Shown here piece by piece: positions 28,652 to 58,156 of a stretch of DNA of 64,000 nucleotides (positions are counted from its first letter, which is position 1; each line of letters opens with the position of its first letter). The translations under genes and the position numbers were made by a program. The stretch is from Auanema rhodensis (taxonomy: Eukaryota > Animalia > Nematoda). The notes beneath the pieces are model-generated. The model did no database searches. It was given only the letters and a program-made list of their open reading frames with translations, and was not told the DNA's origin. Location: assembly GCA_964057225.1 (NCBI GenBank), contig OZ059896.1:6634001-6698000 (forward strand), written 5' to 3'.

Positions 28652-28994
28652 TCTCTTATTCTTTCTTTGATACTCGTGAATACGTTAGTTTTACTCTATT
28701 GATCCTCGCATGTTTTAAGAAGATTCTCGCCTTGTATTTTGCGTGCAACCGGTAGTAGTGACACCATTTCTTTTTTTGTTCAGGTCATGTATTAAGCCCT
28801 TGTATAACCCATGAAAACAATACGAATATTTACTTTAAGGGTTAACATATCTCGTGTAAATCAACATATCCTTAATCTTTCGTGCTTGAATAATAAACAA
28901 CATTTGTATGACTTTATGTGCATTATTTCATCCATATAAAAAAAGAAAACACCTAGACGAAAAGTGAAGAAGAAAGTGTTCAAATATATTAGAA

Positions 28995-31754
28995 TCACTT
29001 GATTTTTTGAGCCAGAATTTCTCTAATATGACGAATAAGATTATTGAGACCATAAATATAGTTTTCGTCTGGTATTCCTTCAGCAGGGAAGACATGTGAA
29101 AAATCTGAAAGTTTATGAATTATACGAATATGAATTCTTGTATCAACCTATCATATAAACTTCCACATTAGGTGAATAACTTTCTTCAGTTTCATAGAGA
29201 AAAAGAAGGGAGGAGGCATAGAAATGAAATATTCGCTGTTGTTCAAACCAATTTTGAATTTTTTCTAATTTTTCTAATACAACATTGAGAACTTCAATAG
29301 AGTTCATTCTACCAGCCTCGAAAAATTCCGATAAACCTATAATGAATGTTCAAGAATACTCATTAATTTAAAAAGAACCATACCATCACCTACATTGTCA
29401 TCAAATCCTTTACCCCACTCTTTGTCTCTTACTTGAACATGATTGCCAACATGCACCTTAAAGATGTGTTTTTATTGCATTTTTCTTTGTTACTAAAGTG
29501 TAATCTTTATATCTTTCAAATTGGTGAGAACAATATTTTTCTTTGACGCTCTCATACTATCCCTCAGATGACACCCAGCCGTTCCGCCGGCTCAACGATC
29601 TTATCTCAGAAGGAAGATCATCGTCGGTATCCCGTCTTTCCCATTAAATGAGCCGATTAGGTTCAGAAGCAGTGGAACGTAACCCGTAATTAGACCTATG
29701 CTGTTGCATGCAACTGTTGCCATACGAGATCGTTCAACTCTTTTCAAAATTTTGCAGAGGAAGGCTCGGGAGGATGGCAACACCTGTGCAGACAGATGGT
29801 TGAAATACATACCATTGCCTCGGGAATACTATGGTGCACTACCATAAGATCTTAGACGGACACTCATAAATCTGGTTTCTTAAACCTTGAAGGAAAGCAA
29901 AGTTTAAACCAAAAATGGACTTGGAAACATAAGAATAGTTTTCATTTAATAGGCTTAAACTACTTACCCGATAACCAAGCAGACGAAATCCTAAAGTTTT
30001 CTGCGGCAAATACTTTGCACTTTCTTTTTCTCTTTTAGCTTTATTGGCAAGAGGATCAAAGGTGACGCGACCCATTTTCACGTCTAAAATAGCGGGATGT
30101 CGGTAAGTAGACGTGACGTCCTCGAGTATTAGAAACTCATGCTCTGAAATAAGTTCTTGATTTTGTATATTGTTGTATGTTTAATAACTCATACACATGT
30201 ATAGATCAGAATATTCTTTGAAATAAACTAAACTCCCTTTCAATATATAACGCATATCTCAAATTATGTTTCATCGATGAGAAAAATAAGATAAGAAATA
30301 ATTAATTCAAAAATCTTCAGCAATTTATAATTTTTTATTGTAAAAATTATATTTAAACACCAGCTGGTTGGTGCTGAGCACTTTTTTCCGGGTTTATCCA
30401 TATTTTTTTGTGCTAACCTTGAATTTAAGGGCTCACAGAAGTGAAACTGACCTTCACCATCAACAACCAATGTTTCTGTTCCGAAAAATCGTGGAGCCAT
30501 CCGCGCTAATTCCATCACATGACCATTGTTCTCAGCACTATAAAATATAAAATTTCATAATCATCCCTATATAAAACTATATAACTAAAATTTATACTTA
30601 CTCGACATAGCTACAAGGTTGATCAGGTCCGGAAGCAACATTGCGCCATTCACTCTCCAGTCTGCGATACACGTTTTCCTAAACAGCCAACCGTAGATGT
30701 CAGTCACTCATCCTATGTTACGCAATCTATATCCGTCAAGATTTGACAAATCTACTCGTGATTTCATGGAATCGGAAGTCAAGTGCATGCGTATGTTATT
30801 AGGCCAAAAAAGACTTCGAACATTTTGATATTTTTATCAAGAAAAAATGAGAGCAAACTCATATAGTAATAGTATTCTTATTATATATCTATGGTTCGAA
30901 AAAATTATCATTTATGAATTAAATAAGATAAGGGTATTAAATGGGTTTACTTGCAGATAGATGGAGACTAGCAATATTTTAAAAAATTGCTATAAGTCAG
31001 ACCATACATTACATATGTACGTGTTCTTCACAAAAACAATTATTGTAAAACTATCCTTTACAGGTCCATTAAACTAGATCATAGTTTATAAACAATATTT
31101 CATAAACGATTAGATGGACAAGTACAACTTGATACCCATCTCTTGAACTATTGTTGATGACCGAACAAGTAAGGAAGGAAATAATTGCAGATTACGCAAT
31201 TTCGATGAATCACAGTGAACATCATCTGAGGTTACAAGCACGATATATGATCTTGACATGGCACATATTGAATTAGAATGACAAAGTTAGTGACGCAATT
31301 TGTCATCCTCCCCATCCCGACACATCCTGTTGTGCTACAGGCGGAAATTTGAGTAATACGGAAGAAACAAAAGCGAATAAATAACTATTCCAAATACCTC
31401 ACAATCACCACGTTTCGCATCCTGTTTTGGTTTTCGAACTTTATTACTCCCAGTTTTTTTCAGAATTCCTATAACAGAGTGTTTAAACCTCGACCTCATC
31501 ACCTGAGCAAACATAAATAGGAGTGGCAATATATAAACACAGGTGAAAGTACTTTAGAGAAAACAGATAAAAAGAAAATATCACTGATAGTAATCAATCA
31601 CACTTCATGTCCGAAAGCATTAGATCCATCCAAAGGAAGTAAAAAATTGCTAACCTATTTCTCTTTTGCCATTCTTGATCACAGATGGGTGATGACCTGC
31701 AATCTGTTCTTCAAACCAATTGTAATCCGCTGGCAAGCCTTCTGTGTCTTTCAT
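28995..31754 (-). CDS. ipmk-1: Inositol polyphosphate multikinase
   Basis: ATG at 31754 gives MKDTEGLPADYNWFEEQIAGHH. Then PRFFG, FLILEDVT, IPK signature PAILDVKMG (PxxxDxKxG), LGFRLLGY, FYASSLLFLYE and MIDFSHV...DENYIYGLNNL. TGA at 28997-28995. Confidence 0.92.
29524..29895 (-). ncRNA. Candidate long multibranch structured RNA in 511-nt ipmk-1 intron (family unassigned)
   Basis: GC-rich island with many helices: TGTTGCCAT/ATGGCAACA, CCGTCT/AGACGG, GATCTT/AAGATC, AGCCG/CGGCT, TATGGT/ACCATA. An ANANNA box (ATAGTA) is followed by an 8-bp terminal hairpin. Confidence 0.55.
31149..31338 (-). ncRNA. Candidate box H/ACA snoRNA in 719-nt ipmk-1 intron
   Basis: Hairpin GCACA..GGATGACAAA/TTTGTCATTC..TGTGC, H box AGATCA (31253-31248), second hairpin GATGAT..AATTGCG/TGCAATT..GTCATC, then ACA (31154-31152). 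Confidence 0.45.
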
Positions 31755-32848
31755 CCTGGAAAGTTAAAATAAAAAGTTCCTAGTTAATTGATAATATGAT
31801 ATTTTTTAAATAACTTTACTATAGTTAGTTCACAACGAATTAGGAATAAATATAAAGTTATGAAGTGAATAGAAGAGCGTGCTAAGTGAAATATATGCAA
31901 ATAACTTTTTAGATTAGAGACAACTACGTTAAATAGAGAACATAAGGCTGTGTCATCTCAAAATGAGAAGAATAAAGATCAAGATGATCGTACGACAGAA
32001 CGGAAAAAATCTGAATTCATAGGAGTTGGACGTTTCGACAACTATTCTGTGACTGTGCGGAATAATACCATGTTGATTGTATTTAAAATGTAGTCACCTG
32101 ATTATTCATGTAACTCGAAATCCAAACATGTTCATTATGAAACAGATCGTCTGAAAAGTGTTCTTAGTATCTTATCATCATACCAGAAATCACGCTTAAA
32201 GTAACACAGAACTAGTAATCATTATCAACATCATCTTGATTTAATTATATATAGACTCCTATTAAATAATTAGAACATACATGGTGTTCAAATACGTATA
32301 CCAATTAGCTTAGAAGCATGTTATTTACCGGAACCTATTTAGAATTACACAAGCACCTGGCAACCTGCTCTGTACGAGTGACAATTTGAATTAATGGACA
32401 GAAGGATGAAGACAAATAGCAGATCGAGACAACATAGGCAACAAAGAGGAGAAGCCATCAAAGCTAGGAGAAATGTTTCGATATAGTGGCAACAGCCGTA
32501 ACAATCTTTGCAAATTCGCCAAAAATTCAAATGAAGTATGAATGCATTGAAATTTTTTATTATATTTGAAATTAAAACATAAAATGTACAGCTCATTCAG
32601 AAACAAAATGAATATTAAAAACGGAAAAAAAATAAAATGGTGACAAGTTCAAGGAAGACTTTCGACACAACGGGTTACATACGGCTGGTTCGTATTGATT
32701 GCAAATAGTTGGACCATTGCGAATTTCTTTGGCACACATCCAGTTAAACCATAGTAGCTGACTATACACAAAGCATTTAAAAACGTGACAATTGATAAAA
32801 TAACTATTTTCTCTCTATTATTCTCTAAATTATACTTAAAATGTAGGC

Positions 32849-55350: not shown

Positions 55351-58156
55351 TCTCTCTCTTTCTCTCTCTCTCTTTCTCTCTCTCTCTTTCTCTCTCTCTC
55401 CCTCTCTCTCTCATTATTACCATCAACATAATACGTAATATCTTTCACTCTCTTCTCCCTCAATCTGCTTCGCGATTTTCTTTCGTGTGCTCTATATGTC
55501 GTCGGGTTCTGTTGTTATACATGGTAGGCTTCAGCTCATTGGCGGGCCCCATCAGACACGAAAAGCAGGCTCCTTAAAATTGTCGGTCCGACCTAACTCG
55601 TCACCACGCGGAACAGCCTATTCCGGTCAGAGGGTTACTAGATCTTGAGACGACCAGCGTCTCTAATGACCGGTACTGCTTCTCTTTCGTTCCTTGTGCA
55701 TCTCGGCTTCTCTCTGTATTTCCTTTTATTGTTGAGTATTTCACAGCTTTAGCGGATTGTCTCAACGATAGAGCTGTCGAAACAGGAAATTTGCTCTCTA
55801 ACCTCAATATATGGTTCAGTGAGAACGATAACGAGCCGAAGGATATAGGCAGGAATAAGCATAGCCTTTCGGACATCCCACTCATCATTGAGTCTCAAAT
55901 CTCAATTCTTAGATTTCAATTAAGTCAAAAGTAAAGAAAATTATAATGAAGAGTGAAAAGAAATTCTTTTTTAATTTGAAAAATATTTAAAAATAAGTAT
56001 TGGAACGCTTTAAAGAGATTTACTCACCAATATTCGAACATGAGATTCCGGAATATCCTGGATAACACAGGCAATGCAAACCATTGTCGTCCGAAAATTG
56101 TTCAACTCTATTATAATTTCCATAATAACATAATGGTCGACCACCTTTTGAACATTCTCCAGAACATTGTATTTCTTGAGAGAAAAGAAAAAAAATGTTA
56201 TATAAAACTATTTTAATGTGAAATTTACCTTTTTGAATTACTTTAAATATTTGAATTTCTGAAGGTGTTTGACCAGAAGCATCCATTGCTATTACTTGAT
56301 ACGATAGTTTTCCTTCATTTGCTATTGAAATCTATAATATTAATTATATAAATAATAAAATATTTTAATCATTTATATATAAAAAACCTTAGTTAAAGCT
56401 TTAGTTTTCATTCCATCTAACTCATCTTCATACACAATATCTTGTCCTTTACGTACAACTAGACGATAACGATCAGCATGACCATATGATGGTAAATCCC
56501 ATTGAATAATTTGATAATCGGAAGTAGCTATGTTGACAGATAGATCACGAACAGCTGAATATCACAAATATTTTGTTGATATCTATATATGTACATTTCA
56601 TATAACTAACCAGATACTGTAACAGGAACAATAGTTAAATTTGCTATTGAATATAGTTGTGGAGATCCAAAATCAATAGCTAATATCTAAAATATATGAT
56701 ATAAATTAAAAATATACATATATATAAGAATAAATAAACCTGTGTACGTATAGGTCTGTATGGTACTTCATGTACTAATACATTTTTTAAGATAATACTT
56801 CCATTTGAAGAGATTTCAAACATTGAATCCTCTTTTGTAAATGTTAATCGTTTTTCAGAATTATAAATAACAGGATCATTATCAACAACCTTAATATATA
56901 TTATAATATATAAATTAATAAAATATATAATAATTACTTGAACTTGTGCTATGATAGTATTAATATCTGATGTCATCGGAATATAAAAAGTATATTGTTC
57001 TGATGAAAATGTTGGAGCATGATGATTACGGTGAGATATTATTATACGTAAATCTAATGAATGCATACGATTACCAGTACATAATCTAAATATTTACATA
57101 GTTTTATAATTAAATATTTTTAATTTTATAAATTACAAATGTAATGTTCCAGTATTATCAGGAGAATTACGAGCTGAACGTACTGTATCCGTTGTATAGA
57201 ATGCATTACGTGATGATCTAAGAATTTTTAATTATATCATATAGTTTAGCTATAGTATTATACCTATATTCAATCCAATCAATTTCTGTTTCTAATTGTC
57301 CAAAGCAGTTTTTCATTTTTTCAATTTGAGCTTGCAACTCAGAGCTCATAGTGAGACGAGTAGATTTTTCAGCCCCTTCATATATTCTCAAATCATAAAT
57401 TTCTGGTGTTAAAGCTGAAAAATAAGATTCAGCTTATACTAAATTTCGGTTGCACTATTTATCTGATACTTTATATAATTTGAAGGTTACAAGGGAAATG
57501 CTTTGAAAATTTAAAATTCTCATACGATGTTCTCATGCTGAGAGAGTAAGTTTGTAAATGGTTTGGAAGCTTTTATTCTATTCTCTTGTTCTGTTTGAGA
57601 CCTTCCTCTCTTTCTTACTCATTCCTTTTGAAAACAGAAGCACGAAATGATTGGAAGGGCTATTAGGACCCTTGGAGATTTGTTCAAAATTTCTATTGCG
57701 TTCAGTACTGACCACCGGAAATACTTTTCACAGTTAAAATTGTTTTTTTAAAACTAAAGCTATTAGAAAAATAAAAAGAATAGGTATAAATATCTTTTGA
57801 GAAATGTGTGTTTGATGAGAAATAACGTTTAAAATATTTTTTTTGAAATTTTCGAATTGAAAAACAGAAAATTTGTAGTAGCCAATGATGTTTTCAACTT
57901 TAGTTGGTCAACGAAAACTTGACAATGTAACTTTTTTTCTGTGAAAACAATAAAGATCTTCTAAAAAGGAAATTAAATGTAAATGAATTTAATAGCATAT
58001 ATTCAAAAGAATTATTCTTAAAGCTTAAGCTGTTCTAGTATAAAATAATTACAACTTTATATATATATAGTAAAGATTATATAAAGAAAAACCTGAATCA
58101 ATGTTTATAGCAAGAAGTGCTATGCAGATAATTGTGAAGTAGAGCTTTATCATCAT
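51583..58156 (-). CDS. Adhesion-type GPCR: signal peptide, cadherin-like repeats, FN3, EGF, HormR, GAIN/degenerate GPS, 7TM (flamingo-like, possibly the fmil-1 orthologue)
   Basis: MMIKLYFTIICIALLAINIDS, cadherin NHHAPTFSSEQYTF..VVDNDP..AIDFGSPQL, FN3 IIQWDLP..YQVIAMD, EGF CLCYPGYSGISC, HormR CP..GGVDWQ..C..RTCTW..W..DQC, GPS-like CVRY..W..CEVSKFGIYSIL, hydrophobic TM exons in 52000-53100, C-terminal VSIV*. The exon chain was joined manually. Confidence 0.75.
54516..54608. repeat. (CT)n-rich microsatellite
   Basis: CT dinucleotide runs within an adhesion-GPCR intron. Confidence 0.9.
55298..55412. repeat. Imperfect (CT)n microsatellite, about 110 bp
   Basis: Long CT run immediately 5' of the structured island. 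Confidence 0.92.
55465..55878 (+). ncRNA. Candidate ~400-nt structured RNA, antisense within adhesion-GPCR intron (family unassigned)
   Basis: Nested helices TTTCGTGT/ACACGAAA, CCGGTCA/TGACCGG, GAGACG/CGTCTC, TGCTT/AAGCA, GTTCCT/AGGAAT, TCGGCTT/GAGCCGA, ATTTCCT/AGGAAAT and ATTGTTGAG/CTCAACGAT, plus crossing ACAGCTTT/AGAGCTGT. G-U pairs favour the + strand. Confidence 0.55.

Follow-up and report, generated by a model that had tools for sequence, protein, structure and literature searches.

Within a 64,000-nt stretch of the genome of the nematode Auanema rhodensis (assembly GCA_964057225.1, contig OZ059896.1, positions 6,634,001 to 6,698,000; hereafter the window, in whose own numbering coordinates are given), the fourth intron of an ipmk-1-like kinase gene of the IPK family holds a GC-rich island that is a real, selected non-coding element, as conserved as the neighbouring exons. 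The element spans 344 bp of the minus strand (29483..29826; intron nt 142-485; 44% GC), as delimited by blastn against the orthologous intron of Auanema sp. JU1783, and the same intron holds it in the strongylids Ancylostoma, Necator, Parelaphostrongylus and a further strongylid represented by locus L003. The reading favoured here, at a probability of about 0.5, is that this block of ~340 bp would act at the level of DNA as a cis-regulatory module, being either an enhancer within the intron or an alternative-promoter region. An earlier note on the same DNA had proposed a structured intronic RNA laid out like telomerase RNA or a small Cajal body RNA (scaRNA); the non-coding feature is real, and neither the fold nor the layout is shared with relatives.

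Conservation at the level of sequence is most evident between the two Auanema introns, where window nt 142-485 and JU1783 nt 57-409 align at 75.7% over 358 nt (expectation value, E, 2.6e-66) and the remainder of the intron is unalignable; the intron core forms a GC island of 44-49% GC against ~30% in the flanks. Nucleotide identity across the element (78-82%) is at or above that of the exons (exon B 74-76%, exon C 80%, exon D 73-77%) in a comparison where neutral sites no longer align, and pairs of strongylids behave likewise, with 75-85% in the element against 71-73% in exon B. A profile combining the two Auanema-type copies, window and JU1783, matches Parelaphostrongylus tenuis (L015:4205-4393, E 3.2e-4) and the L003 strongylid (L003:983-1048, E 6e-3), both matches falling within the orthologous-intron block, a stretch of ~300 nt common to the four strongylids with invariant runs of ~20-30 nt. 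The reverse test, in which an nhmmer profile of the strongylid copies alone was run against the Auanema-type copies, was not significant (E 0.59 for JU1783), and no significant match to the element appeared in the introns of L004, L005, C. elegans or Pristionchus mayeri. The six carriers comprise two Auanema-type copies (the window and JU1783) and four strongylid copies (A. duodenale, Necator, L003 and P. tenuis).

Orthologs were gathered by phmmer with exon B alone as query, and by searching for words with the protein of Necator, after which the loci were fetched, and the orthologous intron proved long in all nine loci compared: ~475 nt in Ancylostoma duodenale (L001), ~505 nt in Necator americanus (L002), ~470 nt in L003, at least 514 nt in L004 (where the contig ends), ~585 nt in L005, ~420 nt in P. 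mayeri (L006), ~2.2 kb in C. elegans ipmk-1 on chromosome IV (L013:4869-7060), 430 nt in JU1783 (L014) and ~1.7 kb in P. tenuis (L015). JU1783 is the closest relative compared as DNA, with amino-acid identities to the window of 78% for exon B and 82% for exon C; exon B of Heterorhabditis bacteriophora, at 79%, lies marginally above it. Two further searches yielded no orthologs, namely a scan of metagenome contigs for the pattern ATGGCAACAG...CTAATTnnnGGTTA, which returned six chance matches (L007-L012), and a word search with the window reading frame running from exon into intron, whose one match was of no help.

The element codes for protein on neither strand. An unannotated exon or small gene could be imagined from a 75-codon open frame on the sense strand (29604-29828), but this frame is lost in JU1783, no Pfam family is matched (best E 0.16), and frame-breaking insertions and deletions (indels) separate the copies, of 6, 4, 4 and 1 nt between window and JU1783 and of 4, 7 and 2 nt among strongylids, all but the first not multiples of three. 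A protein that reaches into the strongylid element (P0121) is a contig gene call that runs an exon into the intron, and a coding origin is accordingly most improbable. A repeat or transposon was also rejected, there being no second copy of the element in the 64 kb, and inverted repeats of 9-13 nt only. Elsewhere in the window, positions 55465-55892, a proposed RNA-like island of ~400 nt lying antisense in an adhesion-GPCR intron, have no blastn similarity to the element.

Over the deep split between the Auanema-type and strongylid copies, what is kept within the block is a series of short words. CAGGTGT, ATGGCAACAGT, TAATTnnnGGTTA and GGRAAAGA occur in the same order in all six species, separated by insertions of 30-50 nt. 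The 11-nt word ATGGCAACAGT (29713..29723, minus strand) is invariant in the six-way alignment, has exact matches in the hookworm introns and served as an nhmmer anchor; TAATTACGGGTTA (TAATTnnnGGTTA; 29680..29692, minus strand), likewise invariant in six species by alignment, exact-word and nhmmer comparison, has a TAATTA core of presumed homeodomain type. CAGGTGT itself (29780..29786, minus strand), conserved in the six-way alignment, is an E-box (CANNTG), with a second E-box, CATCTG, 9 nt upstream; CATCTGT and CACAGGTGTTGC form identical runs between window and JU1783. The P. tenuis copy reads CAGATGT for CAGGTGT, a change that retains CANNTG and destroys a would-be GT donor; a recursive splice site at CAG/GTGT was rejected on this variant and on the shortness of the introns.

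The fold has fared differently from the sequence. The minimum-free-energy (MFE) structure of the window intron does contain the helices described in the earlier note, whose words lie where it placed them: TAAGCCTA (29957-29950), ATAGTA (29560-29555), the pairings TGTTGCCAT/ATGGCAACA, GATCTT/AAGATC and AGCCG/CGGCT, and a 3' hairpin TGAGAGCG/TGTTCTCA followed by ACC. The predicted fold of the window is only modestly better than chance, with MFE z-scores of -2.0 for the whole intron and, over 381 nt, of -2.6 for the sense strand against -0.4 for the antisense. Restricted to the core, z-scores across the six copies show no consistent trend between sense and antisense strands (window -1.1 and -0.2, JU1783 +0.2 and -0.9, A. 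duodenale -1.45 and -1.3, Necator +0.1 and -0.6, L003 -0.1 and -0.5, P. tenuis -2.7 and +1.1, sense value first). In consensus folding with RNAalifold, the structure conservation index (SCI) reaches 0.46 in the Auanema pair, 0.37 among strongylids and 0.05 when all six copies are taken together, with column-shuffle z-scores of -1.1, -0.4 and -0.3, respectively, and in local consensus folding no 100-column window was significant on either strand.

Tracing individual pairs gives the same picture. When the 157 MFE pairs of the window intron are followed into JU1783, 63 are unchanged, 11 altered on one side, 3 compensated, 36 broken and 44 deleted. Of the 97 pairs that belong to the conserved block, 58 are unchanged, 9 have changed on one side, 1 is compensated, 27 are broken and 2 fall on gaps, so that 29 of the 39 changed pairs are lost. 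The 5' strands of four previously described helices lie in a lineage-specific 5' segment (intron nt 7-141; 29827..29961, minus strand) with no counterpart in JU1783, where ~85 nt are missing and the rest is unalignable (identity 0.28 over the longer sequence). This segment carries the TATGGT hairpin, the 8-mer TAAGCCTA and, for both the closing stem and the GTGTC-CGTCT helix, the 5' strand, and all 22 MFE pairs of the closing stem, the GGTTT hairpin and CCGTCT/AGACGG fall on gaps of the JU1783 alignment. Pairing was not kept beyond the expectation from sequence identity, within the power afforded by six sequences, and the predicted multibranch fold is not supported as a structure shared with relatives. 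Three local hairpins may nonetheless exist: GATCTT/AAGATC, for which the two Auanema-type copies agree at 8 pairs, differ on one side at 1 and break 1; CCGCGAGAAAG/CTTCTTTCCGG, which strongylids retain, one of its pairs being compensated; and the 3' hairpin (29525..29554, minus strand), for which JU1783 has 4 of 8 pairs unaltered, 1 changed on one side and 3 broken, its 3' strand AAATATTGTTCTCAC being invariant and its 5' strand changed, with GAACAA/TTGTTC pairable by eye in JU1783 in a register shifted by 2 nt. The proposal of a real structured intronic RNA holds in so far as the non-coding feature is real, and is not supported as regards the structure (SCI 0.37-0.46; most changed pairs lost), and the ortholog-intron alignment that had been suggested reveals a sequence block conserved to Strongylida, with neither fold nor template conserved alongside it.

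Constraint on sequence without constraint on pairing, indels that break any frame, and ordered words with flexible spacing make up a pattern that points to cis-regulatory DNA. On this reading, the block would be a string of short protein-binding words held in fixed order at flexible spacing, and would control how the host kinase gene, or a gene next to it, is transcribed. The Storkhead-box gene upstream would be the obvious candidate target, given that it has stayed linked to the kinase gene in distantly related nematodes. Both the placing of the constraint on the DNA rather than on the transcript, and the identity of the target gene, are what we infer from this pattern.

Several observations weigh against this reading. 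Invariant runs of ~20-30 nt among strongylid families exceed what is usual for nematode enhancers and would fit a protein-binding RNA as well; the element is always in sense orientation within a transcribed intron, a position in which a role in DNA and a role in RNA are inseparable by sequence alone; and the sense strand of the window folds somewhat better than the antisense. The covariation tests, resting on 2 + 4 sequences, have little power, and a small number of short helices could escape them. The labels applied to the words (E-box, homeodomain, GATA and SOX/TCF-like) are presumptive readings by resemblance to consensus sites.

The main rival, at perhaps three parts in ten, is an element that works in RNA without a conserved global fold, as a linear platform of protein-binding motifs in which any local hairpins would be short and few, either in a stable intronic RNA or as a regulator of its own pre-mRNA. 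The sense orientation in every species, the invariant strongylid blocks of up to ~20-30 nt, the better folding of the sense strand in the window (-2.6 against -0.4) and in P. tenuis (-2.7 against +1.1), the two local hairpins that look kept (GATCTT/AAGATC and CCGCGAGAAAG/CTTCTTTCCGG) and the re-formation of the 3' hairpin in JU1783 in shifted register are all compatible with it. The low SCI, shuffle z-scores near zero on both strands, globally as well as locally, and the 27 broken pairs against 1 compensated argue the other way, as do the lack of an Rfam match or of any conserved C/D, H/ACA or Sm word seen in the alignments and the presence of several sister blocks outside the 511-nt intron; in P. 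tenuis, moreover, the element lies ~670 and ~730 nt from the splice sites, which excludes a splice-site-proximal regulator. A more specific version, in which the block is the gene for an unclassified, intron-derived non-coding RNA of ~300 nt common to free-living Auanema-type worms and parasitic strongylids, is doubtful, and so is its corollary that such an RNA was lost or moved in Caenorhabditis and Pristionchus and acts through invariant single-stranded words (such as AUGGCAACAGU) and a few short hairpins beyond the resolution of six sequences.

Telomerase RNA was the most specific identity put forward, with TAAGCCTA, an 8-nt complement of the TTAGGC repeat at intron nt 11-18 (29950..29957, minus strand), as template and, downstream of it, a core, a three-way junction and a 3' end of H/ACA-like form. 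Precedent exists in Caenorhabditis, where telomerase RNA is encoded within intron 2 of nmy-2 and measures 327 nt, with a template 80-90 nt into the intron, a closing stem that is conserved and an end of H/ACA type; the minimum applied to templates there is one repeat plus 2 nt, a rule that TAAGCCTA satisfies, and no telomerase RNA is known outside the Elegans and Japonica groups of the genus (Klapproth et al. 2026, PMC12921731). The oversized intron, the sense orientation, the length of ~300-370 nt and, in the window copy, the 8-nt template-like word all resemble the nmy-2-hosted RNA (PMC12921731; Takeda et al. cited there). The element differs from it in its host gene, in an unconserved template word lying 11 nt rather than 80-90 nt from the 5' splice site, and in lacking a conserved closing stem, an H/ACA end and conservation of structure.

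Comparison with relatives contradicts the telomerase or scaRNA layout, which is refuted as far as sequence can show, and the telomerase identity appears extremely improbable. The 8-mer is judged to be a chance occurrence, a caution the earlier note had itself raised, as it lies outside the conserved block in the segment missing from JU1783, is absent from the sense strand of all nine orthologous introns, and has comparable counterparts in the window, where template-like TTAGGC 8-mers occur at five loci, two of them 9-mers. No template of at least 8 nt is kept in the orthologs, and neither a closing stem nor core helices (neP, P1, P1.1) with covariation were found. The H/ACA 3' domain of H box, hairpin and ACA is incomplete in both Auanema-type copies: ATAGTA (29555..29560, minus strand), the H-box candidate, aligns with ATTGTT in JU1783, which breaks ANANNA, and after the 3' hairpin the window reads ACC and JU1783 reads ACT, with ACA in neither. 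JU1783 has an 11-nt telomere-repeat word of its own inside the conserved block (GGTTAGGCTTAGGG, L014:3316-3326), readable as a template only on the antisense strand. Chance would not be expected to produce such a word within 430 nt, and it is not common to the window, which reads AGCCGGCGGAACGGCT, at the site of the AGCCG/CGGCT hairpin, where JU1783 has the antisense telomere-like word CCTAAGCCTAA; its position on the opposite strand, where the window has none, is a further point against a telomerase RNA.

A box H/ACA small nucleolar RNA (snoRNA) or scaRNA, or another known class such as C/D, U17/snR30, RNase P/MRP or 7SK, is scarcely better placed. ATAGTA followed by a hairpin speaks for such an RNA, and a GC-rich island in a long intron of a housekeeping-type gene recalls the intron-hosted nematode H/ACA snoRNAs (Rfam ceN families), but the element is 2-3 times too long for these and lacks an ACA, a conserved H box and an Rfam match. 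Two hairpins with a hinge H box and an ACA 3 nt from the 3' end, as in box H/ACA sno/scaRNAs, were not found, the H box being lost in JU1783 and ACA replaced by ACC or ACT. The Rfam search that had been suggested produced no family match in the window or in eight ortholog loci: Rfam 15 at the gathering score gave no match in the whole 64 kb, E-value mode (E up to 10) on the region gave noise only (12-16 bits against thresholds of 37-100), nothing inside the element was matched in the eight loci with orthologous introns, and the orthologous C. elegans intron likewise had no Rfam match. C-like and D-like candidate words are unconserved (CTGA becoming GTGA), and no tRNA-like gene was found by the ARAGORN tRNA scan.

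Words resembling those of other RNA classes occur within the element. In L003 (960-985) a perfect tRNA B-box plus T-arm-like word is present (TCGGTTCGAATCCGA, with the B-box-like GGTTCGAATCC), which decays to ATTCGAATCC in hookworms and ATTTTGAAA in the window; a polymerase III gene was dropped in view of this decay, the lack of a tRNA and a TTTT inside the window block. Words like m1 and m2 of U17/snR30 (GTATTCCC and CAACCAT) are lost in Necator and L003 and stand at the wrong end, and the Sm-site-like AATTTTGA is ATTCGAA in strongylids.

The host gene and its surroundings bear on the cis-regulatory reading. The borders of the intron, read directly from the sequence, run from GTAAGT at 29967 to TTTAAG at 29457 on the minus strand, giving 511 nt, and both flanking exons match the Pfam IPK family PF03770 (E 5.5e-13 and 1.2e-13), matches from which the host is identified as a gene of the inositol-polyphosphate multikinase type, in agreement with the original placement of the intron in an ipmk-1-type gene. 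Exon B, upstream (29968..30141, minus strand), has 58 codons and the inositol-phosphate motif PxxxDxKxG, and was the phmmer query for orthologs; exon C, downstream (29386..29456, minus strand), was placed by exon mapping and contains VHVGNHVQVRDKEWGKGFDDNVG. The kinase gene was searched exon by exon rather than as a joined spliced protein, and its exon order in the window is confirmed by the Auanema protein P0181. The description of the other introns as about 50 nt long holds for the downstream pair (47 and ~55 nt) and not for the rest, which measure ~180, ~840 and ~310 nt by exon mapping.

Gene order is kept around the kinase gene, with the Storkhead-box gene, the IPK gene and the gene for subunit B of DNA polymerase epsilon in succession in Necator, Pristionchus mayeri and Auanema, the Storkhead part being matched by open reading frames of the window. 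A UniProt gene model of Heterorhabditis bacteriophora (A0A1I7XDA6; P0001) fuses the Storkhead-box gene to the first kinase exons and ends 3 residues past exon B, which indicates that the two genes are neighbours in that species as well. Sister blocks of conserved sequence are spread over this locus. Intron 2 of the kinase gene (~840 nt) contains one of ~215 nt (31120-31345, minus strand) with 78% identity to JU1783 (L014:1865-2069, E 1e-40), non-coding in the JU1783 gene model. Two more lie between the Storkhead-box and kinase genes (32275-32408 and 32664-32735; 84-86% against JU1783), the former keeping TGCCAGGTGCTTGTGTAATTC, CATTAATTCAAATTGT and CTAATTGGTA, that is, CAGGTG and two TAATT words as in the intron element, although both blocks could instead be 3' untranslated region (UTR). 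A fourth (28747-28885; 82% against JU1783) is situated where the kinase and polymerase-subunit genes converge with their 3' ends, and is probably within the 3' UTRs of these two genes.

The nearest known parallel for a DNA-level role is the set of conserved non-coding elements (CNEs) from worms described by Vavouri et al. (2007), which are 58% A+T, up to 432 bp long with a mean of 69 bp, one-third intronic, and read as enhancers (PMC1852409). Like them, the Auanema element is non-coding, at least as conserved as exons are, and intronic; at 56% A+T it is less extreme than its AT-rich surroundings, and it belongs to a multi-block locus beside a gene of developmental-regulator type (Storkhead box). 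At ~340 bp it is far longer than their mean, though below the maximum, and, whereas the worm CNEs were defined within Caenorhabditis, it is traceable from Auanema to Strongylida, a much deeper span, with no match in the orthologous C. elegans intron.

For nematode biology, these results remove a false lead in the search for a telomerase RNA, an 8-nt template word together with a foldable GC island being able to mimic the expected layout. They also document unusually deep non-coding conservation, a block of ~340 bp being traceable in Auanema, in hookworms and in a deer lungworm relative, in a phylum for which a published account (PMC4447282) reports extensive non-coding divergence. If the element is an enhancer tied to the Storkhead-IPK-polymerase order, it would be a rare testable case of a regulatory block holding nematode gene order together; in either event, it offers a small target common to parasites that is testable in a free-living worm.

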